DNA from: Convolutriloba macropyga
Lineage: Eukaryota
Reading direction: 5' to 3'
Length of the DNA: 64,000 bases
Assembly: GCF_964194025.1 (NCBI RefSeq)
Contig: NC_134471.1
Location: 19,654,001 to 19,718,000 of the forward strand
Shown in pieces: positions 1,458-54,458 of the stretch; position 1 is the stretch's first letter; each line of letters begins with the position of its first letter. The translations under genes were made by a program, and so were the position numbers. Below the pieces are notes generated by a model. That model had not been told where the DNA came from. It ran no database searches and was given only the letters and a program-made list of their open reading frames with translations.

Positions 1458-1810
1458 AATTGCTCTCAAACGAGTGAGCTCTAAAATTGGAAAAAATATA
1501 TTAGTCCTGCTGGTATTTTAATTCCAATTTTTCATATTGCCAATTTTTTGGCCAACTAACGACTTTGGGGGTGAGTTTTTGGCTTAGTCTTTGAGGTTTA
1601 GAGCATCAAACCGAACCCTACTGTGTAGGCTAATTTCATGGTGTAAATGTCAATTTCTTTTAGGTTAGATAACTGCCTCCTTTTATGCCACCGCCCTCGT
1701 TTTGTCTCCTCGCGTGAAGACAAGCTTCCTTGTCTTACGCTAGTTACTACCAAAGCCAGCCGCTCGTCAGTCGTTAGAGAGAAGTTCGTCTGAGATTAAT
1801 TAGTTATGTA
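1458..1810 (+). mobile_element. Degenerate Helentron/DINE-1-like non-autonomous element (HINE family A)
   Basis: Starts AATTGCTCTCAAACG (family 5' subTIR). Ends in a degenerate 3' subTIR cgttagagagaagtt followed by ...gttatgt. Confidence 0.4.
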
Positions 1811-2209: not shown

Positions 2210-2602
2210 TTAATCGCTCTCGAACGAATTATTGTAAACGTGTCGGGCTTTCTTAAATGCAAATTTTTCGCCTGACCTTTTTTGCGCTTTTCTACTAGGA
2301 CATTTTTTTGACTTCTCAAATAACTGTTTCACTCTTTCGTTCTTCATTTTGGAGTGATCTCTTTTGCTCTCACTCCAAAGCGAAGCTTGTTGGTAAAATA
2401 AAACAGATGTGCAACAAGTAGGGCCTGATAGCCAATTGGGCACGGCTTCTGGTAAGGTATCGGGAGTTCCATGGTGCGAATCACGTGGTGGTTAACGATT
2501 TTGTGCACCCATAAAGAAAAGTTTATCTAGGCTACAGCACCTGAATTAAATTGCCTCGCCTATCGTTCGGGATCAATATTTCTGACATTAGTCGGTTTAT
2601 TT
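2210..2602 (+). mobile_element. HINE family A copy
   Basis: 5' TTAATCGCTCTCGAACGAATTATTG. 3' inverted subTIR cgttcgggatcaat (2564-2577), then hairpin ctgac-atta-gtcgg and a T-rich end. Same architecture as 52376-52794. Confidence 0.65.
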
Positions 2603-12599: not shown

Positions 12600-13184
12600 A
12601 GTGAGCTTTTTAAGTTTGTAGCAATTATATTATATAAAATATAAATATCCGGTCTGTCTTGTTTTATGCAATTTTTTGCTTGACCGATTCGTCTGACCCA
12701 CTTGACTTTTCGTCCTCAAAAACTGGATAAACAGGTAGCGTCCAGCGGGCGTTAAGTTCTCTTAGAGCCATTCAGCTCACTAGTCTCCAAGTATGCGATT
12801 CACAGAAACTGCTTTGGAGACTTATACTCATGGTGTGAAGGGCGGTTCTTTGAAGTTTACCCCCCACCCCCCCCCCCAGAACAACCCCCCCCCCACACAC
12901 ACACACAGCAGGCCCCCCCCCCCCCCCGCAATCCTGACCCGTACACATCGTTCAGGTCGTAAGGGCCCCCATGCAGCCAAAGTCCCACAGCCCCCCCCCC
13001 ACACACACACACACTGTTGACCACAGCCCCCCCCCCACACACACACACACTGTTGACCACAGCCCCCCCCCGGTGCACCCCAGAGCAGCGCTCACCTCAC
13101 ACCCTTTCAATTAAGCTAAAGCTGGCCTCACTAAAACTGGCTAGCTACTGTCAAAGCCAACCGCTCGCCTGTCGGTTATGTTTT
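12600..13184 (+). mobile_element. HINE family A copy with central C/CA-rich tandem repeats
   Basis: Remnant aagttt..agcaatta 5' inverted repeat. Core aacaggta...aagttctcttagagcc...actagtctc.aagtatgcgattc is shared with 15910, 31540 and 35808. Ends gtcggttatgtttt like 52781. Tandem cacagcccc..cacacacactgttgac at about 12986-13070. Confidence 0.65.
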
Positions 13185-15870: not shown

Positions 15871-16139
15871 ATTTTACTGAAATGGGTAATGTTAGTTAAG
15901 AGTTTTGCGCGATAAGCAGGTAAAGAGCGGGGCATGAAGTTCTCTTAAAGCCTTGCAGATCACTAGTCTCTAAGTATGCGATTCATCGAAACTCTCTAAG
16001 AGACATGAATTCTTGGTGTTTGTCTTATTAACACCCCCCCCCCCCCCACCTCCTCCACGGTCACGTGACTTACCTCGCTCTAAAAGATGAGTACCTCTCT
16101 CTCAAGGAGACTTTGTGCTCACTTCAATTGATGGAGAAG

Positions 16140-16325: not shown

Positions 16326-16422
16326 CTATTGCGCACTTGTATCTCTGCACATTGCGTTGTACATGTGTTCCGTTTAATGAAATAGCATATAGCGATGTAT
16401 GGATTGAGCTTACAGATTGACT

Positions 16423-17028
16423 ATGAGTACTGTTGCATATGACTTACAGATTCAGTTTCAGCCCTCAATTTTTGATGACTTCCCTCTTGACTGTAAGTTG
16501 AGCTCCTCTTCTGTCTGTAAGGAGTACCAAATTATTGATTATGTTAACTCGATAATCGTAGGTATTATTTCTCTTAATCCAACACTAGTTGCACCTGCTG
16601 ATGAATTCGAAAATTTCAAACAAAATATTAAACATTTTTGTGCACCTACTATTGCAATGAAAGCTCCGATCAAAAGACAAAGTGTGCCGAGAGCTCCTAA
16701 AGCGTTGCAACCACCTTCTAAACAAATTCAATCCATTCCGATGAACCCCAATGCTCCCAAAATTGACGTGACCTCTATGATGTCAATAACTCAAAATATG
16801 AGTACTAACGAGAGAAGTTATAAATGTTCATTTTGCGGACAAGACACGGTTCTGTTGTCTTCTATGAAGCGACATATTGAGACAAAACACTTGCCGAGTA
16901 CAGCCTCTTTTGCGTGTCAGAATTGTGATTACACGACTAAGTTGAGATACGTATTAAAGAATCATTACATTGGAAAACATGGAATGCCAGAATTAGCTGC
17001 TCGAGGCATGATGGCTTATTACAGTTGA
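16423..17028 (+). CDS. Two-finger C2H2 zinc-finger protein, paralog 2 (201 aa)
   Basis: Intact ORF from ATG 16423. Fingers CSFC...HIETKH and CQNC...HYIGKH. Acceptor ttacag ends at 16415. Confidence 0.85.
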   Translation: MSTVAYDLQIQFQPSIFDDFPLDCKLSSSSVCKEYQIIDYVNSIIVGIISLNPTLVAPADEFENFKQNIKHFCAPTIAMKAPIKRQSVPRAPKALQPPSKQIQSIPMNPNAPKIDVTSMMSITQNMSTNERSYKCSFCGQDTVLLSSMKRHIETKHLPSTASFACQNCDYTTKLRYVLKNHYIGKHGMPELAARGMMAYYS

Positions 17029-19317: not shown

Positions 19318-19431
19318 AAATAATGTTACCAGACGCCGGTGTCCATGCTATGAAAATGGAGTATACCAAGTAACGTTAGAAACGTCGCTTACGTTTTCTC
19401 ACGTTAAATTAGATTAAGCTTGTAGGTGAAA

Positions 19432-20025
19432 ATGTTCAATGCATACGAGTTTCAACTCCAAATGTTATCTGATTTTGTTAACGACTTGTCTTCAACCAAT
19501 GACCTGGCCTCTGAATCTAGGCAGTATACAATTCTTGATCATCAAACAGAGGTCATCGGAAAAATTTCTATAACCCCGAAACAAATAGAAACAAATACTA
19601 ATGCTTTTGAGAATTTCAAACCAAATTTGAAGCGTTCTATCGGTCAAGCTGTCGCTCAGCCTCCTGTCAAAAAACAAAGTGCTCCGAAAGTTCCGAAAGT
19701 CTCACAACAACCAACGAAGCCAGTTCAAGCTATGCCGGTAAATTCAAATGCTCCGAAAATTGACGTGACCTCAATGATGTCAGTAACCCAAAACATGAGC
19801 ACTCAGGAGAAAAGCTACAGATGCTCATTTTGCGGATCAGAAAGCTCCCATTTGACATCGATGAAGCGCCACATTGAGACGAAACACTTGCCTAGTACAA
19901 CTTCATTTGACTGTCGAAACTGTGAGTACAAAACAAAACTCAAGTTTATGCTGAAGAGACATTACATGAATAAACATGCAATGCCAGAACCAGCAGCGCA
20001 AGGAATGATGACTTGCTATAACTGA
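19432..20025 (+). CDS. Two-finger C2H2 zinc-finger protein, paralog 3 (197 aa)
   Basis: Intact ORF from ATG 19432. Fingers CSFC...HIETKH and CRNC...HYMNKH. Acceptor ttgtag ends at 19425. Confidence 0.85.
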   Translation: MFNAYEFQLQMLSDFVNDLSSTNDLASESRQYTILDHQTEVIGKISITPKQIETNTNAFENFKPNLKRSIGQAVAQPPVKKQSAPKVPKVSQQPTKPVQAMPVNSNAPKIDVTSMMSVTQNMSTQEKSYRCSFCGSESSHLTSMKRHIETKHLPSTTSFDCRNCEYKTKLKFMLKRHYMNKHAMPEPAAQGMMTCYN

Positions 20026-25051: not shown

Positions 25052-27425
25052 ATGTTGATGGAACAAGTGTACAAAACCAACGCAAACACAGAATTAATTC
25101 TGAAATGTCACGAACAGTTCGCAGTTCAGATCGGAATCTCAGCGTCTGTATTCCAAGTCTCCATTAAACTTTGGCGGGCTGTTTTTGACCTGAACCCGGA
25201 GCTAGACTTGGAGGCAACTCAATGGTTTGCCGCTATTGTGTTGATATCAGCATTGAATTCGCGTATCAGTTCAGAATCGCGGTTACAAGTAAATGTCACA
25301 ACGCTACTTCGTAAAAGCAACATGTCTGTGTTGTCGTTAATGAATAAATTGAAGTACTTAAGAGAAATTGTTTACCTGAGCCAACGATCAATTGACGGTA
25401 TTTTGGACTTTCAAAGAAAGTTTTGCGTCTCGGCAGCAATTTTTGATCGGTTTTGTAAAATTTACGGCGATATTTTTGCAATTGATGTCGAGCGGTCAAA
25501 TGAGGAATTGGACCAAAATTATGTCTTCGATATACCGGAACCAAAACAGGCCTGTTGGTTAATATATTTACTAGCCAAAGATGAAATGCCTATTGCCCAT
25601 ACTCAAATTTTTCTATCTTTTCAAGTACTATTATGCGCTATTGATTTCGTCATGCGAGGCACACAAAAGTTTTTGCTTTTGAATGAATTCTCGATGGCTT
25701 TAGAAAACGAATCTCAAACTGTGGAAGCATTCTCAGAGCTTACTCCAGTTTTGAAACTTTTATGTAATAAATACGGCTGTGACGCTTCAGAAATGGTACA
25801 TGTCAAAAAGAAGCTGGACTCTACTTTTTTTGTTTCGTTTCTGAAAAAGTCAATTTCTGATAAAACTTTATCCAGTTCGTTAGCAGGGGATATTTTTCTC
25901 CCAAACTCGAATGAATTACATGGTCGGTACTGGGAAATATTGGATCGATATTTCGAACTCGACGAAACTTTGTTTTTAGCTCAAGATCCAATCATTGCGT
26001 TGCAAAATAGTTCTCAGCCATCGACAAAAAGCGCATCCAAGAAATCGGAAAACTCGTTAGAAAGTGATCACCCAAAACCCCTTGATGAAAACCCCGTAAT
26101 TGAACAAAATTCAAGTTCTAGTAATGAATTGAATTCAAATTTACGCTCTGAAATTGATCAGCTTTTAGCTAATTTGGACTTGACTCTAACGGAGATTCTG
26201 TCCAACTTTTTCACTAATTCAGAGAAATTATGCGATTCAAATGTAGATGATTTGAAAGAGAATTGCAAAAAGTTGATGTTTGAGGTTGTAGAAGCAATTA
26301 ATAAAAAACAGCCGTCGGAAACCGCCTCAGAAATTGAAGATAATTTTTCGGTTGATAACTTAGATTGTTTGTATGCGATTTGCGTAATTTCTTGTTTAGT
26401 TAATACGTTCCCTTTACCAGTTGCACAAAATTCCGAAAGTCAAATTGACGATGTTAAAGCATTGACTGTTCTTGAATCGTTACGAATATCGTTGCCTCTT
26501 TTAGTAAAGAAAATTGACATTATCGAAGAATATGTTGAAATTTTCTCAACATTGCAATTGTCTAGACTCAAATGTATCGAAGAACGCTGTATCGAGTTTC
26601 ACGTTTTTAAAGATAGCTCATTTATTAAATTATTCATGCAGCAAAAAACGCTGAGTAAGTCGACTGCTTATGAGTTGGAAAATGGCCGAAAGGTTTACTT
26701 GGCCGAATTGGCGATTTTTTCTAACAAAATCTGCAGATTAGCGTACAGAAGATTGCAGCAGTTATGCAAGTTGCTAAATATTGTCTCAGAACTAGAAGCC
26801 AAAATTTGGGAGTGCTTTGAGCATTGCTTATTCGAACGGACATTCCTATTTGAAAACCGCCACTTAGATCAAATTGTCATGTGCTCGATTTACGCAATTT
26901 GCAAAGTGTCTGATAATGAAAGAAAGTTCAAAAATATCACCCAAGCGTACAGAAAAATACCAAACACTGCAGCTGAAGTTTTCAAAAAAGTGAAAATCTT
27001 TGAAGAAAGCAATTCGTATGACTCGATTATAGCATTTTACAATAAGGTTTTCATGCAGACGTTGAAAAACTTCATTCTTCAGTACTCGACAATCGGAAAT
27101 TCAGAAGCTAACAACCCCGAACAACAACCAACAGTCACAAATGTCTTGAAACGAGTAAATCCAAATGTATTGATTCGCAACGCGCTCAACAAGCCAGCAG
27201 TCCACCAACCACCCGCAATCTCAACTTGCAGTGGAAAGGGTAGCCAGATAACTGGGGTCAGTCCGAAGTTCTGGCCAACTGCACCTGGTGGATTGCCCTC
27301 GGATGAACAGTTGCCATTACGTCATATGGCTTCAGCAATAGTGGCGAATAAAGAATACCAGCAGTCGAATCGGAAGAACAAATATACCAGTCGAGAAACG
27401 AAAGTTATTGGGTTTCAGTCAACAG
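25052..27425 (+). CDS. RB1: Retinoblastoma-family pocket protein (RB1-like), large coding exon 1
   Basis: RbN motifs (CWLIYLLAK, LSFQVLLCAIDF, FELDETLFL). Pocket B closely matches RB1 (RLAYRRL, RHLDQIVMCSIYAICKV, YDSIIAFYNKVFMQTLK). Phase-1 donor g|gttggt at 27426. Confidence 0.9.
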
Positions 27426-27989
27426 GTTGGTTTTTCTGTATTTTTGTGGACGGGTTGTTTTGAGTTGCTTTTGTAAAAATTAGAGAAGACCACTGTGGTA
27501 AAGTAAGATGATGAGTGGTGTCTGATTCCCCTATCAAAATTTTAGTTTTAATTTACATGGTTTTTGCGCGGTTTTTTGCACCAATGCGCACTTTTTTTGT
27601 AATAATGCGCGCTTTTTGCACTGATGGTTGGTAGTATAGTGTAACCTAATAACATGTGGACTGACTGTTTCAAAAATGCGACCAAGGAACTTAATGCCCG
27701 GGGAAAAAATATCACTTCGCGTTTCTTTTCGCATTCGAAAAATACTTGCAATGTGTAAAGTTTTTAAGGAGTTACTTAGCCTTTGAAGTTAGTTTAGTCT
27801 CCGACAACACAAGCCTTGAAAGATGAACTGTGCAAAAGACCTTTAGTATTAGGGCGATTTAAGTTATGTTATCAAAATGAAACAATCGCATTTATATATA
27901 CCACGAGGAAACTTCCAACAAACTATAATGTAGTAACAACTTTAAGGAGCAAAGGTATTCAAAGTTTTAAAAAGCTAAGCACGCTTTTT

Positions 27990-31430: not shown

Positions 31431-31734
31431 TAATTGCTCTCAAACGAGAGTTGCTCTCAACTGCGGTCTTTTTAATGCAATTTTTGGCTTGACCGATTTT
31501 TCGTCTGCTCTATTTTGTTTTTCGTCCTCAGAAACTGGGCAAACAGGTAACGCTCGGAGGACCATAAGTTCTCTTCGATCCTTACGCTTAACCAGTGTCT
31601 AAGAAAGCGATTCCCAAAACTTTTTCAGGAGACATTTTCATAGTGCAAAATGCGGTTCTTAATTTTGAAAGTTTGACCTCACAGTCATTCCCCCAAAACA
31701 TCCACATTCCTCCCTTTTCTAAGTGGCGGTGCGA

Positions 31735-31805
<71 letters not shown>

Positions 31806-31954
31806 CCTCCCGCCGCTCTATCCCTCCTTGTTGCTTGAGCCCTCCCCCAGTCGCTGAACCTCCCTATGCAAGCATCTCTAAGCCTCAGCTGGGTACTACC
31901 GAAGCCAACCGCTGGCAGCTCGTTTGAGATTAATCGCACGTCGTTAGTCGGTTA
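31431..31954 (+). mobile_element. HINE family A copy with central (CT)n
   Basis: 5' TAATTGCTCTCAAACG; shared core; (CT)n at 31738-31802; 3' cgtttgagattaat followed by ttagtcggtta. Confidence 0.7.
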
Positions 31955-33269
31955 CAATTGCTCTGAGTTAATCCTGGAATTGAGTCTTTACTTTTCCAGA
32001 ATCGTTAATTATATCCTTTCTTAATAATGTTTTACTTATAAATGAGAAGTGGTTGCGAAAATATGAAGGAAAACTTCTTCACCCACTCCCTTATTTTTTA
32101 ATATAACCGAGGAGCTTTGCGTAATTGAGAAATTCGAACGCTCAAGAATCTTTGGACTGGAGCGTTCGAATTTCGACACTTTGGAGTAGAAATGGTGCAA
32201 AATAGAATTTTTTGCAAAAACTATCAATTTTTTTGCTCAAATTCATCATTTTATGTTTGAAATAACTTTTTTCCAGGTCTTTACTTTTGTCAGCTAATTG
32301 AGTTTCTCGCCTCCAATTGTCCATATTGAGATTTTAAAAATTTTCTATTGTTAACTCACGTGTTTTCAAATTTACTTTAAAGGTTCTGATATAGCTGATT
32401 TGGTGTTCAGCAATCATTGAAAGGGAAGAGTCATCGCCAAAGTAAAAGGTTTTAAAAGAGATTTTTTTGATGGTTTTTGGAAGATGATTTCATTGCTAGC
32501 CTGACTTGCCAAAGTCCCTATAATTGTTTTTGTTTTTCTGCTAAGAGTGATGAGGAGTATTTTTCTTTTTATTATCTTGCAGTGGCTTAAGTTATAGGTT
32601 AGAATTTGCTGTTAGATTGGCATTAAACCGTTAAATTTAAAATTCATTCATTTGATTTCGCTCCGAATTTCATAGCGAATTGGTTTTATTTTCATTTGCC
32701 AAACCACTGTTATAGTTTGATGGTAGGAATGGTATATTGTCTGGCTGCCAAATTGAAATCAAATGTCAGTTTAAGCGTATATTTAAGAAACGCAACTAAA
32801 CTGCTGTTAGACGCAACTAAAGTATTAGTTAGATACGCCTGAACTATAGAATTGTTTTCATTTTCCTTTTATTTTTTTATTAACTATATTTTCAGTTGAG
32901 GATCCGTTGTTTTGCGTTTTTGAAGCCATTTAGTCGTTCAAGGCATTCATCCGGGTTTGAGTTTTTGGAATGTTCACTCAGTATTGTCTAATTCTTGTTC
33001 AAGTTCTGCCGAAGAAGCAGTTAGTTTCTGATTTTTTAAAATAAGCGGCAAGTAGGTATTAATATTCTGTAATGACATGTAAAATATAAGTCCTAAATAT
33101 AAAATTGTAAGTACACAAGACAGAGGAGTACTGAACACTTTTCCGTAAGAAACTGCTGCTAGATTCGCCAGGATAATTGTAAGAAACCTTTTTAATCGCA
33201 AATAAAAACTTTTAGAAGCACGAGAGGTGTGTTGAAACATTCTAGTACGAGTCGTCTTATATAGAATTT

Positions 33270-35710: not shown

Positions 35711-36070
35711 TTAATTGCTCTTATACGAAGTTTGTAGCGATTTTATTAGTCCTGTGGTTTTTTTCGTTTTTTGTCTGACCCTTCAGTTTTTTACCCTTGA
35801 ACACGAGATAAACAGTTAAAGCACTGAAGGCAATAACCGGCTGAGCTATTCTCTTAGAGCCTTACTCCTTACTAGTCTAATAATGCAATTCACCAAAATG
35901 GTATGAATGGAGATTCCTTATCTTATAATTTTGAACCCTCCGCACCTCAGCCCGATCACCTTCAGTCACCCCCAATAACCCCCCCCACCAAATTCCTGTA
36001 CCTGGCAATCTGGATACCCCTTTCATTCAGCCCCTCCTAGCCCCCGTGTCTTGACCCCCAATCTACGGGG
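35711..36070 (+). mobile_element. HINE family A copy (3' end unclear)
   Basis: 5' TTAATTGCTCTTATACGAAGTTTGTAGCGATT; core ttctcttagagcctt..actagtct; C-rich centre. Confidence 0.55.
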
Positions 36071-39810: not shown

Positions 39811-40468
39811 TTTAAATTGGTTGATTTTTTAGCCCCTTTTCAATAAAAATTTTTAAATGCGCATCTTTTGATTTAATTTGAAATTTGAACTGTTTAGTTT
39901 TGCTTTTCTCTGGTTTATCTTCGACGACAGTATTTGTTTTAAAATGTTCGATGAATTATCAAGTAATAACGCCCTTTCTCAACAAAAATTTTGAATTGTG
40001 CATCATTTGATTTGATTTGAAATGCGAACTGTTTAGTTTTGCTGTTTTTGGTTTATCCTCGAAGGCAGTATATGTTTTAATTTGGTTAATGCGTTATTTT
40101 CAAGTAATATCGCACCTTTTCAACAAAAATTTTGGATTCCGCTTCATTTGATTTGATTTGAAATGTGTGGTTAGTTTTGCTGTTTTTGGTTTATATTCGA
40201 AGCTAATATTTGTTTAAAATTGGTTGATGAATGATTTTCAAGTAATAGCGCACCTTTTCAACAAAAATTTTGAAATGCGCATCATTTGATTTGAAATGTG
40301 AACTGTCTAGTTTTACTGTTTTTTTGTTTCTATTCGGAGTTAATATTTGTTTTAAATTGGTTGATAAATTATCAAGCGATAGAGCGCCTTTTCAACAAAA
40401 ATTTCGACATGTTCATCATTTGATTTGATTTTAAATGTGAACTTCTTCGTTTTGGTGTTTTTTGGTTT
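39811..40468. repeat. ~140-bp minisatellite, ~4.7 diverged copies
   Basis: Anchor cc.ttt.caac/taaaaattt recurs at about 39833, 39972, 40114, 40253 and 40387. Confidence 0.85.
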
Positions 40469-41751: not shown

Positions 41752-41825
<74 letters not shown>

Positions 41826-41826
41826 A
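41752..41826. repeat. (CT)n microsatellite
   Basis: Directly visible. Confidence 0.95.
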
Positions 41827-41980
41827 ATAAGTTTAGTTAAATTTCGAAAACTGACAATTTGGAAAATATTGAGTTTTCAAAAATGCTTATGAAAACTTGG
41901 TATGTACACCTTGCGCTATCCTAATTTTAAAACTGATGATTGAATAAAGTATTTTACTAAAAAAATCCAGAATAATTTTG

Positions 41981-44900
41981 TGAAATATGTTGTTGACCTA
42001 TTTAATCTCGTCCGTTTCACCCTCTCGCAGAACTTAAAACTAATAAATAGCACAAATGGCTCTGATTGTTTTAACAAAAAGCCTCTCGATAAAGCATAGA
42101 AATATAGAAAGAAAAACTTAATCAATTTATCATCTTGAAACACTTATGACAACACTCTTGTATGAAGGGCATAAAAAAGAAAAACTTTTGCTAATTCTTA
42201 TGTCTATTTTTCCTACAAAATATAATTAAGTCCTGCCAACAGCAGTGTTGAGTACATAGAAAAAACTTACAGAACTGTTAAGATTTGTTTTGCAACATTT
42301 TCTATTATCATGTACAAGAAACTGCTGAATAGTGAGTTTGAAGGATCAGTTAATTTATCAAGAAAGCAAAACTCGGTACGTTAAAGTCAAATCTTATGAG
42401 ACTTGAGTTGCAATTTGAATTGCGTTTCGGAGAGGAAATTTGTGACGCAAACTGATTTCAACCCTTGATAAAAATTAAGTGTAATCTTCTGGAGTAAATT
42501 TCTAAAACTTTATAATTAGTTCCAAAGATAGCAGAATCAGTTATTTTTATCAAAGAAGGAGAAATTGATTGTCGGAACTAACACAGCTCACTAAGCAAGT
42601 TTCGTGGCCATTTGAATTGCGATTTGAAGAGAGAATGTATGACGCGAATCGATTTAAAAAAAATCTAATCTTTCTGAATAAATTTCAAAGCCACATCATG
42701 AAGCCTTTTTGTTTATATACAATAAGATACTACATTTATGAGTTTTTGAGACAAATTTTTACGTAGTTTATTTTTTTAATAACAGCCAAATTGAATGGTT
42801 ATTTAGAGCAATATGCAATAGCTTTCTGATGAGTATAAAACGAGTGTAACTTACTGAATAGTGTAACGAATTTGCCAAAAATGCAAAGAGGCAAGAGTTA
42901 AAGAACGCTTTTTAATTGCTCTTGAATGAATATGTTGTTGAGCTAATTAATCTCGTCCGTTTCACCCTCTCACAGAACTTAAAACTAATCAATTACACAA
43001 ATGGCTGTGATTGTTTTAACAAAAAAGGCTCTCGATCAAGCATCGAAAAATAGAAAGAGAATTTAATCAGTTTATCAACTTGAAACACATATGACCACAC
43101 TCTGTTATGAAACGCATAAAAAAGAAAACGTTTTGCTAATTCTCATGTCTATTTTTCCTACAAATTCTAAATAAGTGCTGCCAATAGCACAGTTGACTAC
43201 ATAGAAAAAATTTACAGAACTGTTAAATTTTGTTTTGCAACATTTTATATTATCATGTACAAGAAACTGCTGAATCGTGAGTTTGAAGAATCACTTAATT
43301 TATCAAGAAAGCAAAACTCGATAAGTTAAAGGTAAATCTTATGAGACTTGAGTTGGAATTTGAATTGCGTTTCGGAGAGTAAATTTTTGACACAAACTGA
43401 TTTTAACCTTTGATAAAAATTAAGTGTAATCTTCTGGAGTAAATTTCTAAAACTTTGTAATTAGTTCCAAAGATAGCAGAATCAGTTATTTTTAGCACAG
43501 AAGGAGAAATTGATTGTCGGAAGTAACACAGCTCACTAAGCTAAGCAAGTTTCGTGGCCATTTGAATTGCGATTTGAAGAGAGAATTTATGACGCGAATC
43601 GATTTTAAAAAAAAATAAAATCTAATCTTTCTGAATAAATTTCAAAGCCACATCATGAAGCCTTTTTGTTTATATACAATAAGATACTACCATTTATGAG
43701 TTTTTGTGACAAATTTTTACGTAGTTTTTTTAAATAACAGCCAAATTGAATGGTTATTTAGAGCAATATGCAATAGCTTTCTGATGAGTATAAAACGAGT
43801 ATAACTTACTAAATAGTGTAACGAAGTTGCCATAAATTCAAGGAGGCAAGAGTAAAGAACGCTTTTTGATTGCTCTTGAATGAATACGTTGTTGACCTAT
43901 TTAATCTCGTCCGTTTCACCCTCTCGCAGAACTTAAAACTAATTAATTACACAAATGCCTCTGATTGTTTTAACAAAAAGCTTCTCGATCAAGCATAGAA
44001 AAATAGAAAGAAAAAATTAATCATTTTATCATCTTGAAACACTTATGACAACACTCTTGTATGAAGGGCATAAAAAAAGAAAAAGTTTTGCTAATTCTTA
44101 TGTCTATTTTTTCTACAAAATATAAATAAGTCCTGCCAGCAGCAGGGTTGAGTACATAGAAAAAACTTACAGAACTGTTAAGATTTGTTTTGCAACATTT
44201 TATATTATCATGTACAAGAAACTGCTGAATCGTGAGTTTGAAGAATCAGTTAATTTATCAAGAAAGCAAAACTCGGTACGTTAAAGTCAAATGTTATGAG
44301 ACTTGAGTTGCAATTTGAATTGCGTTTCGGAGAGGAAATTTGTGACACAAACTCATTTCAACCTTTGATAAAAATTCAGTGTAATCTTCTGGAGTAAATT
44401 TCTAAAACTTTCTAATTAGTTCCAAAGATAGCAGAATCAGTTATTTTTATCAAAGAAGGAGAAATTGATTGTCGGAAGTAACAGAGCTCACTAAGCAAGT
44501 TTTGTGGCTGTTTGAATTGCGATTTGAAGACAGAATTTATGACGCGAATCGATTTAAAAAAAATCTAATATTTCTGAATAATTTTCAAAGCCACATCATG
44601 AAGCCTTTTTGTTTATATACAATAAGATACTACCATTTATGAGTTTTTGTGACCGATTTTTACGTAGTTTTTTTTAATAACAGCCAAATTGAATGGTTTT
44701 TTAGAGCAATATGAAATAGCTTTCTGATGAGTATAAAACGAGTGTAACTTTCTAAAAAGTGTAACGAAGTTGCCAAAAATTCAGGGAGGCAAGAGTTAAA
44801 GAACGCTTTTTAATTGCTCTTGAATGAATATGTTGTTGACCTATTTAATCTCGTCCGTTTCACCCTCTCGCAGAACTTAAAACTTATTATTTACACAAAT

Positions 44901-47900
44901 GGCTGTGATTGTTTTAACAAAAAGCCTATCGATCAATCATAGAAAAATAGAAAGAAAAATTTATTCAGTTTATCATCTTGAAACATTTATGACAACACTC
45001 TTGTATGAAAGGCATAAAAAAGAAAAAGTTTTGCTAATTCTTATTTCTATTTTTCCTACAAAATATAAATAAGTCCTGCCAACAGCAGAGTTGAGTACAT
45101 AGAAAAGACTTACAGAACTGTTAAGATTTGTTTTGCAACATTTTATATTATCATGTACAAGAAACTGCTGAATCGTGAGTTTGAAGAATCACTTAATTTA
45201 TCAAGAAAGCAAAACTCGGTACGTTAAAGGTAAATTTTATGAGACTTGAGTTGCAATTTGAATTGCGTTTTGGAGAGGAAATTTGTGACACAAACTGATT
45301 TCAACCTTTGATAAAAATTAAGTGTAATCTTCTGGAGTAAATTTCTAAAACTTTCTAATTAGTTCCAAAGATAGCAGAATCAGTTATTTTTATCAAAGAA
45401 GGAGAAATTGATTGTCTGAAGTAACACAGCTCACTAAGCAAGTTTCGTGGCTGTTTGAATTGCGATTTGAAGACAGAATTTATGACGCGAATTGATTTAA
45501 AAAAAATAATATATAATATTTCTGAATAAATTTCAAAGCCACATCATGAAGCCTTTTTGTTTTTTTTACAATAAGATACTACCATTTATGAGTTTTTGAG
45601 ACAAATTTTTTTCGTAGTATCTTTTTTTAATAACAGCCAAATTGAATGGTTATTTAAAGCAATTTGCAATAGCTTTCTGATGAGTATAAAACGAGTGTAA
45701 CTTACTAAATAGTGTAACGAATTTGCCAAAAATCCAGAGAGGCAAGAGTTAAAGAACGCTTTTTAATTGCTCTTGAATGAATATGTTGTTGAGCTATTTA
45801 ATCTCGTCCGTTTCACCCTCTCGCAAAACTTAAAACTTATTAATTACACAAATGGCTGTGATTGTTTTAACAAAAAGCCTCTCGATCAATCATAGAAAAA
45901 TAGAAAGAAGAATTTATTCAGTTTATCATCTTGAAACATTTATGACAACACTCTTGTATGAAAGGCATAAAAAAGAAAAAGTTTTGCTAATTCTTATGTC
46001 TATTTTTCCTACAAAATATAAATAAGTCCTGCCAACAGCAGAGTTGAGTACATAGAAAAAACTTACAGAACTGTTAAGATTTGTTTTGCAACATTTTATA
46101 TTATCATGTACAAGAAACTGCTGAATCGTGAGTTTGAAGAATCACTTAATTTATCAAGAAAGCAAAACTCGATACGTTAAAGGTAAATCTTATGAGACTT
46201 GAGTTGCAATTTGAATTGCATTTCCGAGAGGAAATTTGTGACACAAACTGATTTCAACCCTTGATAAAAATTAAGTGTAATCTTCTGGAGTAAATTTCTA
46301 AAACTTTGTAATTAGTTCCAAAGATAGCAGAATCAGTTATTTTTATCAAAGAAGGAGAAATTGATTGTTGGAAGTAATACAGCTAACTAAACAAGTTTCG
46401 TGGCCATTTGAATTGCGATTTAAAGAAATAAAATCATGTTTCTGAATAAATTTTAAAGCCACATCATGAAGCCTTTTTGTTTATATACAATAAGATACTA
46501 CAATTTATGAGTTTTTGAATCAAGTTTTTACGTAGTTTCTTTTTTTGATAACAGCCAAATTGAATGGTTATTTAGAGCAATATGCAATAGCTTTCTGATG
46601 AGTATAAAACGAGTGTAACTTACTAAATAGTGTAACGAAGTTGCCAAAAATGCAAAGAGGCAAGAGTTAAAGAACGCTTTTTAATTGCTCTTGAATGAAT
46701 ATGTTGTTGACCTATTTAATCTCGTCCCTTTCACCCTCTCGCAGAACTTAAAACTAATCAATTACACAAATGGCTCTGATTGTTTTGACAAAAAGCCTCT
46801 CGATCAAGCATAGAAAAATAGAAAGAAAAATTTATTCAGTTTATCATCTTGAAACACTTATGACAAAACTCTTGTATGAAACGCATAAAATTGAAAACGT
46901 ATTGCTAATTCTTATGTCTATTTTTCCTACAAAATCTAAATAAGTGCTGCCAATAGCACAGTTGACTACATAGAAAAAATTTTACAGAACTGTTAATTTT
47001 TGTTATGCAACATTTTATATTATCAAGTACAAGAAACTGCTGAATCGTGAGTTTGAAGAATCACTTAATTTATTAAGAGAGCAAAACTCGATACGTTAAG
47101 GTTAAACCTTATGAGACTTGAGTTGCAATTTGAACTGCGTTTCGGAGAGGAAATTTTTGACACAAACTGATTTCAATCTTTGATAAAAAATTAAGTGTAA
47201 TCTTGTGGACTAAATTTCTAAAACTTTGTAATTAGTTCCAAAGATAGCAGAATCAGTTGTTTTTATCAAAGAAGGAGAAATTGATTGTCGGAAGTAACAC
47301 AGCTCACTAAGCAATCTTCGTGGCCATTTGAATTGTGATGTGAAGACAGACTTTATGACTCGAATCGATTTTTAAAAAAATTAAAATCTAATATTTCTGA
47401 ATAAATTTCAGAGCCACATTATGAAGCCTTTTTGTTTATATACAATAAGATACTACATTTATGAGTTTTTGAGACAAATTTTTACGTAGTTTATTCTATT
47501 AATAACAGTCAAATTGAATGGTTATTTAGAGCAATATGCAATAGCTTTCTGATGAGTATAAAACGAGTGTAACTTACTAAATAATGTAATGAGTTGCCAA
47601 AAATGCAAAGAGGCAAGAGTTAAAGAACGCGTTTTAATTGCTCTTGAATGAATATGTTGTTGACCTATTTAATCTCGTCGGTTTCACCCTCTCGCAGAAT
47701 TTAAAACTTATTAATTACACAAATGGCTCTGATTGTTTTAACAAAAAGCCTCTCGATCAAGCATAGAAAAATAGAAAGAAAATTTAATCAGTTTATCATC
47801 TTGAAACACTTATGACAACACTCTGGTATGAAACGCATAAAAAAGAAAACCTTTTGTTAATTCTCATGTCTATTTTCCCTACAAAATCTAAATAAGTGCT

Positions 47901-50900
47901 GCCAATAGCACAGTTGACTACATAGAAAAAATTTTACAGAACTGTTAATTTTTGTTATGCAAAATTTTATATGATCATTTACAAGAAACTGCTGAATCGT
48001 GAGTTTGAAGAATCACTTAATTTACCAAGAAAGCAAAACTCGATACGTTAAAGGTAAATATTATGAGACTTGAGTTGCAATTTGAATTGCGTCTCGGAGA
48101 GGAAATTTGTGACGCAAACTGATTTTAACCTTTGATAAAAATTAAGTTTAATCTTCTGGAGTAAATTTCTACAACTTTGTAATTAGGTCCAAAATAGCAG
48201 AATCGGTTATTTTTATCAAAGAAGGAGAAATTGATTGTCGGAAGTAACACAGCTCACTAAGCGAGTTTCGTGGCCATTTGAATTGCGATTTGAAGACAGA
48301 ATTTATGACGCGAATTGATTTAAAAAAATAAAATCATCTTTCTGAATAAACTTCAAATTCACATCATGAAGCCTTTTTTTAATATACAATAAGATACTAC
48401 CATATATGAGTTTTTGAGACAAATTTTTACGTAGTATCTTTTTTTAATAACAGCCAAATTGAATGGTTATTTAGAGCAATATGCAATAGCTTTCTGATGA
48501 GTATAAAAGGAGTATAACTTGCTAATTAGTGTAACGAAGTTGCCAAAAATTCAAGGAGGCAAATGTTAAAGAACGCTTTTTAATTGCTCTTGAATGAATA
48601 TGTTGTTGACCTATTTAATCTCGTGCGTTTCTCCCTCTCGCTGAACTTAAAACTAATCAATTGCACAAATGGCTCTGATTGTTTTAACAAAAAGCCTCTC
48701 GATCAAGCATAGAAAAATATAAAGAAAAATTTAATCAGTTTATCATCTTTAAACAGTTATGACAACACTCTGGTATGAAACGCATAAAAAAGAAAAAGTT
48801 TTGCTAATTCTCATGTCTGTTTTTTCTACAAATTCTAAAGAAGTGCTGCCAACACCACAGTTGACTACATAGAAAAAACTTACCGAACCGTTAAAATTTG
48901 TATTGCAACATTTTATATTATGTACAAGAAGCTGCTGAATCGTGAGGTTGAAGAATCACTTAATTTATCAAGAAAGCAAAACTCGATACGTTAAAGGTAA
49001 ATCTTATGAGACTTGAGTTGCAATTCGAATTGCGTCTCGGAGAGGAAATTTGCGACGCAAACTGATTTTAACCTTTGATAAAAATTAAGTGTAATCTTCT
49101 GGAGTAAAGTTCTAAAACTTTGTAATTAGGTCCAAAGATAGCAGAATCAGTTATTTTTATCAAAGAAGGAGAAATTGATTGTCGGAAGTAACACAGCTCA
49201 CTAAGCGAGTTTCGTGGCAATTTGAATTGCGATTTGAAGACAGATTTTATGACGCGAATTGATTTTAAAAAAATAAAATCATCTTTCTGAATAAACTTCA
49301 AAGTTACATCATGAAGACTTTTTGTTTATATACAATAAGATACTACCATATATGAGTTTTTGAGACAAATTTTTACGTAGTATCTTTTTTAATAACAGCC
49401 AAATTGAATGGTTATTTAGAGCAATATGCAATAGCTTTCTGATGAGTATAAAACGAGTGTAACTTAATAAATAGTGTAACGAAGTTGCCAAAAATGCAAA
49501 GAGGCAAGAGTTAAAGAACGCTGTTTAATTGCTCTTGAATGAATATGTTGTTGACCTATTTAATCTCGTGCGTTTCTCCCTCTCGCTGAACTTAAAACTA
49601 ATCAATTGCACAAATGGCTCTGATTGTTTTAACAAAAAGCCTCTCGATCAAGCATAGAAAAATAGAAAGAAAAATTTATTCAGTTTATCATCTTGAAACA
49701 CTTATGACAAAACTCTTGTATGAAACGCATAAAATTGAAAACGTATTGCTAATTCTTATGTCTATTTTTCCTACAAAATCTAAATAAGTGCTGCCAATAG
49801 CACAGTTGACTACATAGAAAAAATTTTACAGAACTGTTAATTTTTGTTATGCAACATTTTATATTATCATGTACAAGAAACTGCTGAATCGTGAGTTTGA
49901 AGAATCACTTAATTTATCAAGAAAGCAAAACTTGATACGTTAAAGGTAAATCTTATGAGACTTGAGTTGCAATTTGAATTGCGTTTTGGAGAGGAAATTT
50001 GTGACGCAATTTGATTTTAACCTTTGATAAAAAATTAAGTGTAATCTTCTGGAGTAAGTATTTAAAACTTTGTAATTAGGTCCGAAGATAGCAGAATCAG
50101 TTAATTTTATCAAGGAAGGAGAAATTGATTGTCGGAAGTAACACAGCTCACTAAGCAAGTTTCGTGGGCATCTGAATTGCGATTTGAAGACAGACTTTAT
50201 GACGCGAATCGATTTTTAAAAAAATTAAAGTCTAATCCTTCTGAATAAGTTTCAAAGCCACATCATGAAGCCTTTTTGTTTTTATACAAAAAGATACTAC
50301 ATTTATGAGTTTTTGAGACAAATTTTTACGTAGTTTATTTTTTTAATAACAGCCAAATTGAATGGTTATTTAGAGCAATATGCAATAGCTTTCTGATGAG
50401 TATAAAACGAGTGTAACTTACTAAATAGTGTAACGAAGTTGCCAAAAATGCAAAGAGGCAAGAGTTAAAGAACGCTTTTTAATTGCTCTTGAATGAATAT
50501 GTTGTTGACCTATTTAATCTCGTGCTTTTCTCCCCCTCGCTGAACTTAAAACTAATCAATTGCACAAATGGCTCTGATTGTTTTAACAAAAAGCCTCTCG
50601 ATCAAGCATAGAAAAATAGAAAGAAAAATTTAATCAGTTTATCATCTTTAAACTGTTATGACAACGCTCTGGTATGAAACGCATAAAGAAGAAAAAGTTT
50701 TGCTAATTCTCATGTCTAATTTTTCTACAAAATCTAAAGAAGTGCTGCCAACAGCACAGTTGACTACATAGAAAAAAGTTACCAAACTGTTAAAATTTGT
50801 TTTGCAATATTTTATTTTATGTACAAGAAACTGCTGAATCATGAGTTTGAAGAATCACTCAATTTATCAAGAATGCAAAACTCGATACGTTAAATGTAAA

Positions 50901-52389
50901 TCTTATGAGACTTGAGTTGCAATTTGAATTGCGTTTCGGAGAGGAAATTTGTGACGCAAACTGATTTTAACATTTGATAAAAAATTAAGTGTAATCTTCT
51001 GGAGTAAAGTTCTAAAACTTTGTAATTAGGTTCAAAGATAGCAGAATCAGTTATTTTTTGATCAAAGAAGGAGAAATTGATTGTCGGAAGTAACACAGCT
51101 CACTAAGCAAGTTTCGTGGCCATTTGAATTGCAATTTGAAGACAGAATTTATGACGCGAATCGATTTAAAAAAAAATAAAATCATCTTTCTGAATAAACT
51201 TCAAAGCCACATCATGAAGCCTTTTTGTTTATATACATTACGATACTACCATTTGTGAGTTTTTGAGACAAATTTTTACGTAGTATCTTTTTTTAAAAAC
51301 AGCCAAATTGAATGGTTATTTAAAGCAATTTGCAATAGCTTTCTGATGAGTATAAAACCAGTGTAACTTACTAAATAGTGTAACGAAGTTGCCAAAAATG
51401 CAAAGAGGCAAGAGTTAAAGAACGCTTTTTAATTGCTCTTGAATGAATATGTTGTTGACCTATTTAATCTCGTCCCTTTCACCCTCTCGCAGAACTTAAA
51501 ACTAATCAATTACACAAATCGCTCTGATTGTTTTAACAAAAAGCCTCTCGATCAAGCATAGAAAAATTGAAAGAAAAATTTGATCAGTTTATCATCTTGA
51601 AACACTTATGACAACACTCTGGTATGAAACGCATAAAAAAGAAAACGTTTTGTTAATTCTCATGTCTATTTTCCCTACAAAATCTAAATTAACGCTGCCA
51701 ATAGCACAGTTGACTACATAGAAAAAACTTACCGAAATGTTAAAAATTGTTTTGCAACATTTTATATTATCATGTACAAGAAACTGCTGAATCGTGAGTT
51801 TGAAGAATCACTTAATTTATTAAGAGAGCAAAACTCGATACGTTAAAGGTAAATCTTATGAGACTTGAGTTGCAATTTGAATTGCGTTTCGGAGAGGAAA
51901 ATTGTGACACAAACTGATTTCAATCTTTGATAAAAAATTAATTGTAATCTTCTGGAGTAAATTTCTAAAACTTTGTAATTGGTTCCAAAGATAGCAGAAT
52001 CAATTATTTTTATCAAAGAAGGAGAAATCGATTGTCGGAAGTAACACAGCTCACTAAGCAAGTTTCGCGGCCATTTGGATTGCGATTTGAAGACAGAATT
52101 TATGACGCTAATGGATTTAACAAAATAAAATCATCTTTCTGAATAAATTTCAAAGCCACATCTTGAAGCCTTTTTGTTTATATACAAAAAGATACTACCA
52201 TTTATGAGTTTTTGAGACAAATTTTTACGTAGTTTCTTTTTTTTAATAACAGCCAAATTGAATGGTTTTTTAGAGCAATATGAAATAGCTTTCTGATGAG
52301 TATAAAACGAGTATAACTTAAAAGTGTAACGAAGTTGCCAAAAATGCAAAGAGGCAAGAGTTAAAGAACGCTTGTTAATTGCTCTTGAA
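41981..52389. repeat. Tandem array of 11 complete ~950-bp units (macrosatellite, 10.4 kb)
   Basis: Unit starts (atatgttgttga) at 41985, 42930, 43884, 44828, 45781, 46699, 47652, 48598, 49543, 50497 and 51447. Unit lengths 918-954 bp; units differ by several percent. Confidence 0.97.
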
Positions 52390-52794
52390 CGAAGTTCACA
52401 GCAATTATTGTAGAGGTGTGTGTCTTTTTTATGCAAAATTTTCGCTTGACAATTTTGACTTTTCGAGTGACTTTTACGTCCTTGACTTTTTGCGTTTTGC
52501 GTGATCTAAAATTTTCTCTCAATCACAATTTCAAGCAGCTAAAATCCAATTAGCGGCACTTTATTACTAAAAGTCAAATGAAAAGTGCGCCGAAACTGGT
52601 GCCATTTGTTACTTTAAATCTTATATACTGTGGTACATTTTAACCTCTAATGTGGTTATTTGAAGCCCACTATTGAACTTCTTAGTCCCATTTAGCCCCC
52701 CCCCCCCCCCGACTGAAGCAGGCTGCTGCAATTGATTAGAGCTCCCACTAGTCGTTCGAGAGCAATTATATCAACATTTAGTCGGTTATGTTTT
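52376..52794 (+). mobile_element. Best-preserved HINE family A copy (Helentron/DINE-1-like)
   Basis: 5' subTIR TAATTGCTCTTGAACG with adjacent inverted repeat AAGTTCACAGCAATTA; gtgtgtgtc microsatellite; C-run; 3' subTIR CGTTCGAGAGCAATTA at 52753-52768; terminal gtcggttatgtttt. Confidence 0.75.
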
Positions 52795-54458
52795 CAAGAA
52801 GTAATCCCATTCATTTAAGGTTTTGAAGATGGTTAGGTTTTAAGCGAATAATTTTTTTCGGTGGTTGATTTTTTTTCAGGGAAAAAATCGGCCATTTGTA
52901 TAATTTGTGTAAAGTAGTTTATATTTCTCAATTTCAGAAAAAAAATTGACCAAAAATATTATTACAATTGCCAAAAGAACCCAGAAAGTAGTTAAATTTT
53001 TGAAAGAATTTGTTACAAGAGAACTGTTTTTGTTATAGAAAGGATTGAGTAATGAACAAAATCTTGGAAAATGTGATCAATTTTTTTTTAATTTATGGCC
53101 AGATTAACCTTAATAGAGCCAAATTAGGCCGAAATTTTTGTCTTCACAAACCTTAGTCGAAAGCTAATTTCGTGAATTATATTGCGGCTGAAAGTTGAAT
53201 TCTAGACGTAGAGCTTTAAAATGATGCCATCAATGTATGTTATGATTTGACAACGGATTTGATAACAATGTGATCAATATCTAATTCGCAATTTTGACAA
53301 TTTTGAACTTTGAAAATATTTTCCACGCATTAACCTGAAAAATTCTTGTGGGGGCTAGATATACGTTTGCGCCATACAGATGTGAGTTGAATAAATAAAC
53401 TCCTTAACACAGTCTGTTTATAATGACCAGTTTGAGAATCTTTTGCCCCATTTAACGACTTAACAAACCATTAATTATTTGCCCTTTCCCTTGCGTCCAT
53501 GTCTACCGAAAAATTCTTTGAAAATCACTTTAATAAATAAACTGGCGATCTGTACAACTTAAACATTTCTGCTTCAAATCAAACAACAGTTTGTTTGAGA
53601 ACAGAGCTCAGCTTCAGAATAATAAAGACGCGATTGAAGTTTTACGACGCTTGTTCTGTTGATGTTTTAGTGTACTGTTTCGGGATTAATGATTTATATT
53701 GTTGTAAAGTTAAATTTAAAATTTATAATCAAGTGTAAATTATCAGCTTTTGTATTGAGTTTCACTTCCCGTACACCACCTGTTAATGTTTTTTGTATCA
53801 CGCCTTTTATTACACTTCTATCGCTAAAAGCGATACTTTTTACTGTTGCGAAACTTTCAGGTCCTTCCTGAGAACGATACGTAAAAAAGTTTTTTATATA
53901 TATTAACCAAGTTTGTTTTTTTTTGCAAAATAAAAACTGTCTCAATATTTGTTCATACGTCATTTCACACAAATAAACAGAAGAATCTTCATTTTTTTAC
54001 TGTCGGTTGAAGTGAAAAGACAAACGGATTTCAGCCAATCAGAATGCAGCATTTGCTTTAGTAATTCCTTCGCATATCTGAGCTTTAAAACCTCTTAAAA
54101 TACAATTCATTGAGCAAATTTAAAGTAACACAATTAAGCATTTGTCACAAATTGTAAAACAAAAGTCAACTTGAGTAAATTTTAACTTGCTCCCTAAAAA
54201 TTTACCTGGAATAATTTAAATTGATTGCTTCCATAAACAAAAGTAATTTTGCTCTTTCATCCAAAATTCCAGCAACATATCTAGTCTGTTTTATCCTGCT
54301 TTGCATTTTTGAAGTTGCATTAACAAATTTTGAAGCTAAAATTAATTGGAAAAACAAGCGTTTGTAGTCATAGCTACTGTTTACCAATTTGAAATTTGTT
54401 CATTTTTTGTTGCTTACTTGATTACAAATTCGACAATTACTGAAAAACGGTGTTTGGA

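Follow-up and report, generated by a model that had tools for sequence, protein, structure and literature searches.

Satellites with large monomers can arise from a transposon fragment and other genomic DNA, as in the potato satellite Sobo, and breaks or stalls at hairpins or palindrome centres, as well as microhomology-mediated template switching (FoSTeS/MMBIR), are established general mechanisms. In Drosophila, exon 1 of hydra and an adjacent partial DINE-1 element underwent nine tandem duplications, for which the authors invoke unequal crossing-over rather than transposition, since the host DNA concerned flanks the element instead of being carried within it (Chen et al., 2007, PMC1904467). 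Truncated plant Helitrons amplified by rolling circle form arrays with many 5' ends and one 3' end, as a review summarises the work (Xiong, Dooner and Du, 2016, via PMC12628747), and satellites have expanded from the internal repeats of HINE/DINE-1-type elements, as with Cg_HINE of the oyster (PMC7492417; review PMC12628747). HINEs are recognised by subterminal inverted repeats of 12-15 bp or longer, the 5' one a few nucleotides from the 5' end and the 3' one set back from the 3' end and followed by a short palindrome or stem-loop; they have a T-run or TT boundary and no target-site duplication, are non-coding, occur at several scattered sites, often enclose a microsatellite or tandem repeat at their centre, and have as counterpart an autonomous Helentron (Rep-helicase-endonuclease) with the same ends (Thomas et al., 2014, PMC4067079).

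The locus studied here lies in a 64-kb stretch of DNA (the window). As at hydra, host sequence by a HINE-type element has been duplicated in tandem with part of that element; unlike there, only 13 nt of the element take part, the ~946-bp unit is non-coding, the breakpoint falls at the tip of a terminal hairpin, and the array appears old and static. The oyster satellites are likewise satellite-like arrays tied to a Helentron-type non-autonomous element, but they sit between the element ends and travel along, whereas the array here is outside the element. With Sobo it shares a kilobase-scale monomer made of a transposon piece and non-transposon sequence, although the transposon share is 13 nt and the parent element still stands at the array edge.

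An in-register repeat search found a long unit repeated head-to-tail with a period of ~946 bp and sharp edges, that is, a macrosatellite, which TRF had missed because its longest period was 500. The array and its units are as follows.

41981..52389, plus strand: macrosatellite, 11 head-to-tail units of 918-954 bp, non-coding, 30% G+C (from spacing, coordinates and identity)
41826..41980, no strand: left flank, between a (TC)37 microsatellite and the array, without homology to the unit end
41981..42926, plus strand: unit 1 (left edge)
42927-43880: unit 2
43881-44824: unit 3
44825-45777: unit 4
45778-46695: unit 5
46696-47648: unit 6
47649-48594: unit 7
48595-49539: unit 8
49540-50493: unit 9
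50494-51443: unit 10
51444..52389, plus strand: unit 11, adjoining the complete element C, without a close partner among the units (92.3-93.4%)
42407..42690, plus strand: old internal direct repeat present in each unit, in unit 1 coordinates (unit-consensus self-BLAST, E 1e-6)

The initial annotation had counted exactly 11 whole units, and the 11 in-register copies bear this out; wholeness is automatic for arrays grown from one duplicated segment, whose breakpoints set the phase. Pairwise identity between units is 91.0-95.4%, and the internal direct repeat (consensus 426-524 against 623-711, spacing about 197 bp) is 69% identical. Homology stops at both array edges (local alignment, shuffle p 0.18-0.74), the best local alignments of 150 nt and 400 nt of left flank to the unit having shuffle p 0.18-0.20. 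Within the units there is neither an Rfam family nor a tRNA, and none of their ORFs is conserved from unit to unit; ten ORFs of the units are absent from the record and found no match in a protein search. Inverted repeats within the unit are at chance level. The monomer had been taken for unique host sequence, which holds for the 64-kb window, the scope of the check (no match outside the array at E<0.01); metagenome pattern scans returned nothing related to it.

Immediately to the right lies element C, listed here with its parts and with the other family copies of the window.

52376..52789, plus strand: element C, HINE-like (non-autonomous Helentron/Helitron2-type), ~414 bp, with T, 5' subterminal inverted repeat, C15 tract, 3' subterminal inverted repeat and 3' motif
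52376..52392, plus strand: 5' inverted repeat TAATTGCTCTTGAACGA, 17 nt, 94% complementary to 52752-52768
52377..52406, plus strand: predicted 5' terminal hairpin, stems 1-7/24-30 and 10-14/18-22, loop nt 15-17, -7.5 kcal/mol
52696..52710, plus strand: C15 homopolymer at the element centre, where copy B has a (TC)n tract
52752..52768, plus strand: 3' subterminal inverted repeat TCGTTCGAGAGCAATTA
52778..52789, plus strand: conserved 3' motif TTAGTCGGTTAT, common to copies A (2588) and B (31944)
2212..2599, plus strand: family copy A, without the 11-nt inverted terminus copy
31432..31955, plus strand: family copy B, with 10 nt of its own terminus repeated in direct orientation at +20 and with a (TC)n tract inside
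35713..35765, plus strand: 5' end of related copy D, with an inverted terminus copy as in C and a degenerate hairpin
1458..1801, plus strand: related copy E

Element C carries the paired inverted repeats of a HINE, and related pairs occur in A and B; its 5' boundary is of the HINE kind, flanking-base duplication was not seen, and it is non-coding, with no ORF and at least five copies in 64 kb. Its 5' inverted-repeat motif is enriched in the window, at 24 matches (10 of them the array copies) against 3.9 expected. The 3' end, approximate and set against copies A and B, falls at about 52789 and not at 52794 as first annotated; some 22 nt, holding the TTAGTCGGTTAT motif, extend beyond the 3' repeat. 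The 3' hairpin described there proved weak, since the sole stem after the repeat has 5 bp and -1.0 kcal/mol, and 137 of 200 shuffles fold equally well. The window holds no Rep/helicase ORF; ORFs of at least 120 aa belong to a BEL/Pao-like retroelement, zinc-finger genes and an Rb gene. Elements of this type abound in the genome, and a scan of all of it could be expected to yield a few coincidences by chance.

The array and the element meet in a junction that recurs through the array. Every unit ends in T+AATTGCTCTTGAA, that is, T and the first 13 nt of the element terminus; TTGCTCTTGAA terminates 11/11 units and TAATTGCTCTTGAA all except unit 2, which has TGATT... instead. The copies within the array are these.

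42913..42926, plus strand: T and first 13 nt of the terminus, end of unit 1
43867-43880, 44811-44824, 45764-45777: the same 14 nt, ends of units 2-4
46682-46695, 47635-47648, 48581-48594: the same 14 nt, ends of units 5-7
49526-49539, 50480-50493, 51430-51443: the same 14 nt, ends of units 8-10

From there units 1-10 continue with TGAATA(T/C)GTTGTTGA, and unit 11 with CGAAGTTCACAGCAATTA, which is element body. At the left edge, unit 1 starts as TGAAATATGTTG at 41981; it begins TGAAATATG, with one extra A compared with the TGAATATG of all other units. There is no terminus at the start of this leftmost unit and no remnant of one in the left flank. Unit coordinates and junctions agree here with the earlier description, by which every unit closes on the first 14 nt of the HINE or a near copy (10/11 exact), units 1-10 return to the left-edge sequence and unit 11 enters the full element. 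The TGAA microhomology proposed for the join has to be abandoned, because the junction CTCTTGAA|TGAATATG still has both copies of TGAA; read most simply, the ends were joined bluntly at +13 and a single A was later gained or lost, with GAA at +15 to +17 making the breakpoint ambiguous between +13 and +17.

Comparison of the five family copies (5' ends at 1458, 2212, 31432, 35713 and 52377) places this junction with respect to the element. All five begin AATTGCTCT/AATCGCTCT right after T or TT, and the terminus is common to them. Because their upstream flanks are unrelated, the family boundary must be T|AATTGCTCT, which puts the array junction inside the element, at +13 to +17. For the same reason the monomer consists of 5' flank and 13 nt of terminus, as had been proposed: about 933 bp, then T and the 13 nt. 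Neither the body of the element nor the other family copies resemble the unit body, and TTAGTCGGTT is not present in the units. The element was inserted before the duplication took place, because T and the 13 nt stand in every unit and no partial unit lies beyond the element.

The first 30 nt of element C fold into a predicted hairpin with z -4.11 (0/200 shuffles fold as well), and the junction, at +13/+14 or up to +17, falls at its tip. Equally strong hairpins occur at only 17 loci in 64 kb (34-nt windows). At the internal array junctions this hairpin is not possible (0 kcal/mol), and a hairpin between flank and terminus is not significant (z -0.2 to -0.7). Lacking the inverted terminus copy, copy A has no 5' hairpin. 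At +17 to +19 family members carry an inserted copy of the terminus, direct in B and E and inverted in C and D, which suggests that this is a rearrangement-prone spot. For random two-breakpoint events the chance of landing within 4 nt of such a hairpin tip is about 0.6%, a figure that is post hoc because the hairpin was sought only after the junction had been flagged. This is one locus, and chance placement at about 0.4-0.6% per array is not rare across a whole-genome scan.

The relationships among units tell how the array grew. Shared-variant sites number 79 and private ones 158, and the pattern of sharing departs strongly from random (variance 14.4, simulated 2.1; 0/2000 simulations reach 14.4). 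The clades {1,3,4,5}, {6,9} and {8,10} have support of at least 96/97, internal branches measure at most 0.013, and terminal branches 0.023-0.037. The genealogy is thus hierarchical, neither a pure star nor polar. Since there are sister units that are not adjacent, unequal exchange must have involved several units at a time, and since unit 11 has no close partner (92.6% to unit 10, 93.4% to its best match), units were not added repeatedly from the element side. The marks of a hydra-type event, an element-side flank co-duplicated with a partial element and a hierarchical genealogy, are both found here. The near-star shape of the tree, with its short internal and long terminal branches, is also compatible with one amplification burst of another kind.

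We tentatively favour, at somewhat less than even odds, an origin of the array in an old and unique local duplication, set off by a break or stall at the hairpin tip and followed by copy growth through unequal exchange and then by stasis. A small HINE-like element would have inserted about 933 bp downstream of 41981, and one ~946-bp segment, from 41981 to 13-17 nt inside the element, would then have been duplicated in tandem. The hairpin may have caused either a replication stall with template switching or a break at its tip, the end joining the upstream site, on the sister strand or chromatid, through no more than 3 nt of homology and, in the simplest reading, none. Out-of-register exchange or slippage, some of it in multi-unit steps, could over a short period have raised the number of copies from 2 to 11, and the array would have been static since, each unit gathering 2-4% of private changes. 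On this reading, the element contributed a fragile structure and not an enzyme. The junction would resemble known palindrome-centre and FoSTeS/MMBIR breakpoints in its position at a stable hairpin apex and its 0-3 nt of homology; it differs from them in that the hairpin has only 30 nt and comes from a transposon end, and its causal role, like the repair pathway that acted, is our inference.

It is rather unlikely that the position is a coincidence, with an ordinary tandem duplication and unequal exchange in which terminus and hairpin had no role. Of random two-breakpoint events, about 0.4% would land in the opening 17 nt of one of the window's six family 5' ends, and among hundreds of arrays in an element-dense genome about one chance case is expected. 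The terminus copies, moreover, show no robust extra conservation: 1 of 14 columns varies (binomial p 0.08, not significant), and p ranges from 0.002 to 0.27 across window sizes. Its position within the terminus is, however, a particular one: hairpins of comparable strength number only 17 in the 64 kb, and the breakpoint falls at the tip of one of them; the terminus copies inserted at +17 to +19, moreover, suggest a rearrangement-prone spot.

The mechanism first put forward, by which the terminus was nicked or replication re-initiated there, or the flank amplified by rolling circle, we regard as improbable. A cut by Rep, or re-initiation, at the element's 5' end would set off re-replication of the flank, or a ~946-bp circle (flank and 13 nt, with the T|A nick site retained) would be copied by rolling circle and recombined back into the locus. 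Read in the alternative phase, the array does offer ten extra 5' termini, each after a T-run, and a single 3' end, the pattern of the rolling-circle-amplified truncated plant Helitrons as the review presents them (Xiong et al., 2016, via PMC12628747); eleven copies of the first 13 nt here face one 3' repeat and motif. The tree is also near a star, its terminal branches being 2-3 times as long as those inside it, and a nick-primed strand stalling at the hairpin and switching upstream would yield the exact junction. Unlike the array here, those plant arrays, so far as the review describes them, repeat element-internal sequence and begin with a 5' end, whereas this body is upstream of the element and unrelated to it and the first unit lacks the terminus. 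The evidence leans against the mechanism on further points: the junction lies inside the element and not at the boundary where family copies begin and a nick for rolling-circle replication would be expected, synthesis would run into the element and away from the amplified flank, there is no polarity between units 11 and 10, three well-supported clades and the 79 shared variants contradict a single burst of identical copies, and a Rep/helicase gene is absent from the window.

Very unlikely is a reading of the monomer as a Helentron-type module in its own right, mobile or composite (5' terminus and a body of about 933 bp ending in a T-run), and of the array as a head-to-tail concatemer of truncated elements. 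The phase-shifted unit would open with the canonical terminus after a T-run, and its central pair of old direct repeats recalls many HINEs (Thomas et al., 2014, PMC4067079), but the unit body is unlike the five family copies and the rest of the window, the units have no 3' inverted repeat or 3' motif, and the leftmost one is missing the terminus. That the array or its copy number comes from mis-assembly is scarcely credible even though long tandem repeats are hard to assemble, since artefactual copies would be near-identical, whereas between these units there are differences of 5-9%, which include 158 private substitutions and unit-specific indels (918-954 bp).

A broader proposition, which we consider decidedly doubtful, is that in this Helentron-rich genome HINE-like hairpin-capped 5' ends are recurrent seeds that turn adjacent unique DNA into macrosatellites. 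On reaching the hairpin tip, 13-17 nt into the element, a strand primed at the nick of the transposase, or else an ordinary replication fork, would stall and switch back upstream. If this were true, the direct and inverted terminus copies at +17 to +19 would have arisen in the same way, on a small scale.

The array was recovered by a direct-repeat search as 11 in-register copies with a spacing of 918-954 bp, from 41981 to 52389; Tandem Repeats Finder is blind to it, its longest period being 500. Cutting at the recurring TGCTCTTGAA yields 11 units of 918-954 bp (numbered from left to right) with pairwise identities of 91.0-95.4%, so that the exactly 11 whole units counted in the initial annotation are confirmed. 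This integer is in itself uninformative, since any array built from one duplicated segment consists of integer units whose phase is set by the two original breakpoints. All 11 units end in TTGCTCTTGAA, and all except unit 2, which has G at the second base, in TAATTGCTCTTGAA (10/11). Unit 1 starts at 41981 with TGAAATATGTTG, units 1-10 are directly followed by TGAATA(T/C)GTTGTTGA, and unit 11 runs on into CGAAGTTCACAGCAATTA, the body of the neighboring element C. Neither flank resembles the unit beyond the array edges; a degraded terminus looked for in the left flank was not significant, nor was the similarity of element C and the right flank to the unit. The unit contains an old internal direct repeat (~100 nt, 69% identical), and a scan of the array for RNA families (Rfam), tRNAs and an ORF common to the units found none. 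A sub-threshold match to a bacterial sRNA at 54208-54311 was dismissed as chance. With its 918 bp, unit 5 (45778-46695) falls ~30 bp short of the others, owing to a deletion within alignment columns 661-720, an A-rich stretch in which the units vary most.

Element C carries 17-nt inverted repeats at 52376-52392 and 52752-52768 (94% complementary) and belongs to a family with the following members in the window, the stretches in brackets covering the terminus and the sequence right after it:

1458, + strand, 5' end of copy E (1458-1490)
2212, + strand, 5' end of copy A (2212-2245)
12656-12850, + strand, fragment
13140-13174, + strand, fragment
15914-16006, + strand, fragment
31432, + strand, 5' end of copy B (31432-31465)
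35713, + strand, 5' end of copy D (35713-35746)
52377, + strand, 5' end of element C (52377-52410)

In the window the motif AATTGCTCTYRAACGA occurs more often than expected (24 matches, including the 10 array copies, versus 3.9; 0/100 shuffles), and outside the array it marks the 5' ends at 1458, 2212, 31432, 35713 and 52377. These five ends all lie on the + strand, each directly after T or TT. Copies A, B and C have in common a 3' inverted repeat set back from the end, with TTAGTCGGTT ~10 nt further on; the element centers hold a (TC)n tract in B and a C15 tract in C. By these features the family agrees in most respects with HINEs (non-autonomous partners of Helentrons) as structurally defined by Thomas et al. 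(2014, PMC4067079); the 3' stem-loop of element C is not significant, and no autonomous Helentron partner was found within the window. All copies and fragments share the + strand across several genes; for five full copies this has a chance of ~6%. In copy B, at 31944-31975, the 3' motif (TTAGTCGGTTAC) runs directly into AATTGCTCTGAG, the first 9 nt of a family 5' terminus, and then into unrelated sequence starting with TT, an arrangement resembling a head-to-tail joint or else a rolling-circle product of excess length whose second 5' end is truncated.

The upstream 200 nt of the five family copies have no mutual similarity. The family therefore starts at AATTGCTCT, directly after a T, an element boundary further upstream is not indicated, and the ~933 bp preceding the terminus of element C lie outside the element family. 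Neither the five elements nor the rest of the window match the unit significantly, BLAST matches in the window being at chance level only. Together, these results support the anatomical reading proposed initially, namely that the monomer is 5' flank plus the element terminus. There is no partial unit beyond the element, which implies that insertion of the element came first and was followed by duplication of a segment that extends 13 nt into the element. None of ten unit ORFs had an exact match on record, a weak negative as the references contained stop codons as well as non-ATG starts; when a 72-aa unit ORF was used to search for homologues, no candidate emerged, and a metagenome scan for the junction pattern gave nothing. 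Two metagenome matches to an internal 20-mer (L001 and L002) are unrelated and due to chance.

Both founding breakpoints are readable to within ~4 nt. The TGAA microhomology proposed for the junction was not borne out: the joint of CTCTTGAA to TGAATATG retains both TGAA copies, so neither was consumed. Read most simply, element position +13 was joined bluntly to 41981 and one A was later gained or lost; since the element continues with CGAA where the unit starts with TGAA, the breakpoint may lie at any position between +13 and +17. We also made a new observation, a predicted hairpin in the first 30 nt of element C (stems 1-7/24-30 and 10-14/18-22, loop at nt 15-17; -7.5 kcal/mol, z -4.1, with 0/200 shuffles folding as well). 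Given this loop, the array junction sits at the hairpin tip. Equally strong folds occur at only 17 loci in 64 kb (34-nt windows), and a random two-breakpoint event would fall within 4 nt of such a tip in ~0.6% of cases, or inside the outermost 17 nt of any of the six family 5' ends in ~0.4%. The hairpin exists because of an inverted copy of the terminus, 11-13 nt long in C and the related D, right after +17. Subfamilies differ after the shared 16-nt terminus, this copy being inverted in C and D, direct in B (TTGCTCTCAA twice) and E, and absent in A. Such direct and inverted copies are subfamily traits older than the insertion of element C, and +17 to +19 is a spot repeatedly rearranged in the family; the copies may represent Rep-binding repeats or have arisen through recurrent template switching. 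Flank and terminus pair no better than shuffles, conservation of the junction region depends on window size and is not robust, and the array-internal copies of the terminus show no significant excess of conservation over the remaining sequence.

The units differ at 79 shared and 158 private sites, and the sharing of variants is non-random (variance 14.4 versus 2.1 simulated, maximum 18 versus at most 10; 0/2000 simulations reach these values). A maximum-likelihood tree supports three clades, {1,3,4,5}, {6,9} and {8,10}, with internal branches of at most 0.013 and terminal ones of 0.023-0.037. This pattern indicates that the array grew in several steps, some of which moved blocks of units, as sister units are not neighbors; growth was confined to a short period, followed by long stasis. 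Unit 11, which adjoins the element, has no close partner (92.3-93.4% to other units). If units had been added by repeated re-initiation at the element end, the youngest and most similar ones should be found there; their absence counts against this process.

As the most likely origin of the array we tentatively favor a stall or break at the hairpin tip, one tandem duplication, and then unequal exchange. The terminal hairpin of element C would stall a fork or break at its tip; the end would be joined to the sister strand or chromatid at a site 946 bp upstream, which would give the duplication, and unequal exchange would later raise the copy number. A coincidence in which the hairpin has no role is possible but clearly less probable, and one such case is expected in a genome-wide scan. 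We consider unlikely the mechanism first proposed, a nick or re-initiation at the terminus with rolling-circle amplification of the flank. It is in keeping with the near-star tree of units and with the combination of many 5' ends and one 3' end, which recalls plant Helitron arrays as they are summarized in a review (Xiong et al., 2016, via PMC12628747). However, family boundaries place the nick at position 0 and not at +13 to +17, the direction of rolling-circle synthesis is into the element, a terminus is lacking in the first unit, and the array has no polarity. It is very improbable that the monomer is a mobile or composite module, as the unit has no terminal inverted repeats of its own above chance and no significant match elsewhere in the window. 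An assembly artefact is hardly credible, since the units are 5-9% divergent and carry indels of their own. The nick mechanism is thus not supported, and the hairpin-tip breakpoint takes its place as a more specific and testable reading. That HINE 5' caps are, more generally, recurrent seeds of macrosatellites seems doubtful to us.

Tandem duplication next to a HINE is already known, and the array adds one clean new instance of it. Its closest counterpart is Drosophila hydra, with nine duplications of exon 1 together with a partial DINE-1 adjacent to it; the authors favor unequal crossing-over because the host DNA flanks the element instead of being contained in it (PMC1904467). This anatomy has to be contrasted with the well-described satellites that lie inside HINEs, such as oyster Cg_HINE (PMC7492417; reviewed in PMC12628747). 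Few satellites retain the founding junction and the attached parent sequence, and this array has both, with one breakpoint at the tip of a transposon-end hairpin, which sharpens the initial hypothesis. If the hairpin association were general, it would offer a concrete and testable way in which single-copy DNA can become a macrosatellite, and would add a new kind of impact that Helentron-type elements have on genomes.

The array lies in a stretch (36-56 kb) that is AT-rich throughout (29-33% G+C) and has no ORF of at least 120 aa. A 138-bp minisatellite (39835-40468; 4.6 copies, 80% matches) is found 1.5 kb upstream of it, and a (TC)37 microsatellite (41752-41825) 155 bp upstream. Two C-rich copies of ~535 bp (14626-15158 and 15221-15759; 82% identical, 62 nt apart) with long poly-C/CCCA-like tracts are probably neighboring copies of another short element, and were rejected as a second comparable array. 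A G+C-richer block (0.42-0.45) at 5140-10456 is a BEL/Pao-type LTR retroelement remnant, with consecutive + strand ORFs matching DUF1759, reverse transcriptase and integrase. Three C2H2 zinc-finger ORFs of ~195-203 aa (11454-12038, 16417-17028 and 19426-20025) are tandem paralogs, spaced by 5.0 and 3.0 kb and 69-73% identical in DNA over 300 nt; at least two of the duplicated blocks contain a HINE fragment of the copy B type (12656-12850, 15914-16006). Finally, an 803-aa ORF at 25052-27463 has strong matches to RB_B (1e-33) and DUF3452 (Rb N-terminal), and represents a retinoblastoma-family gene.
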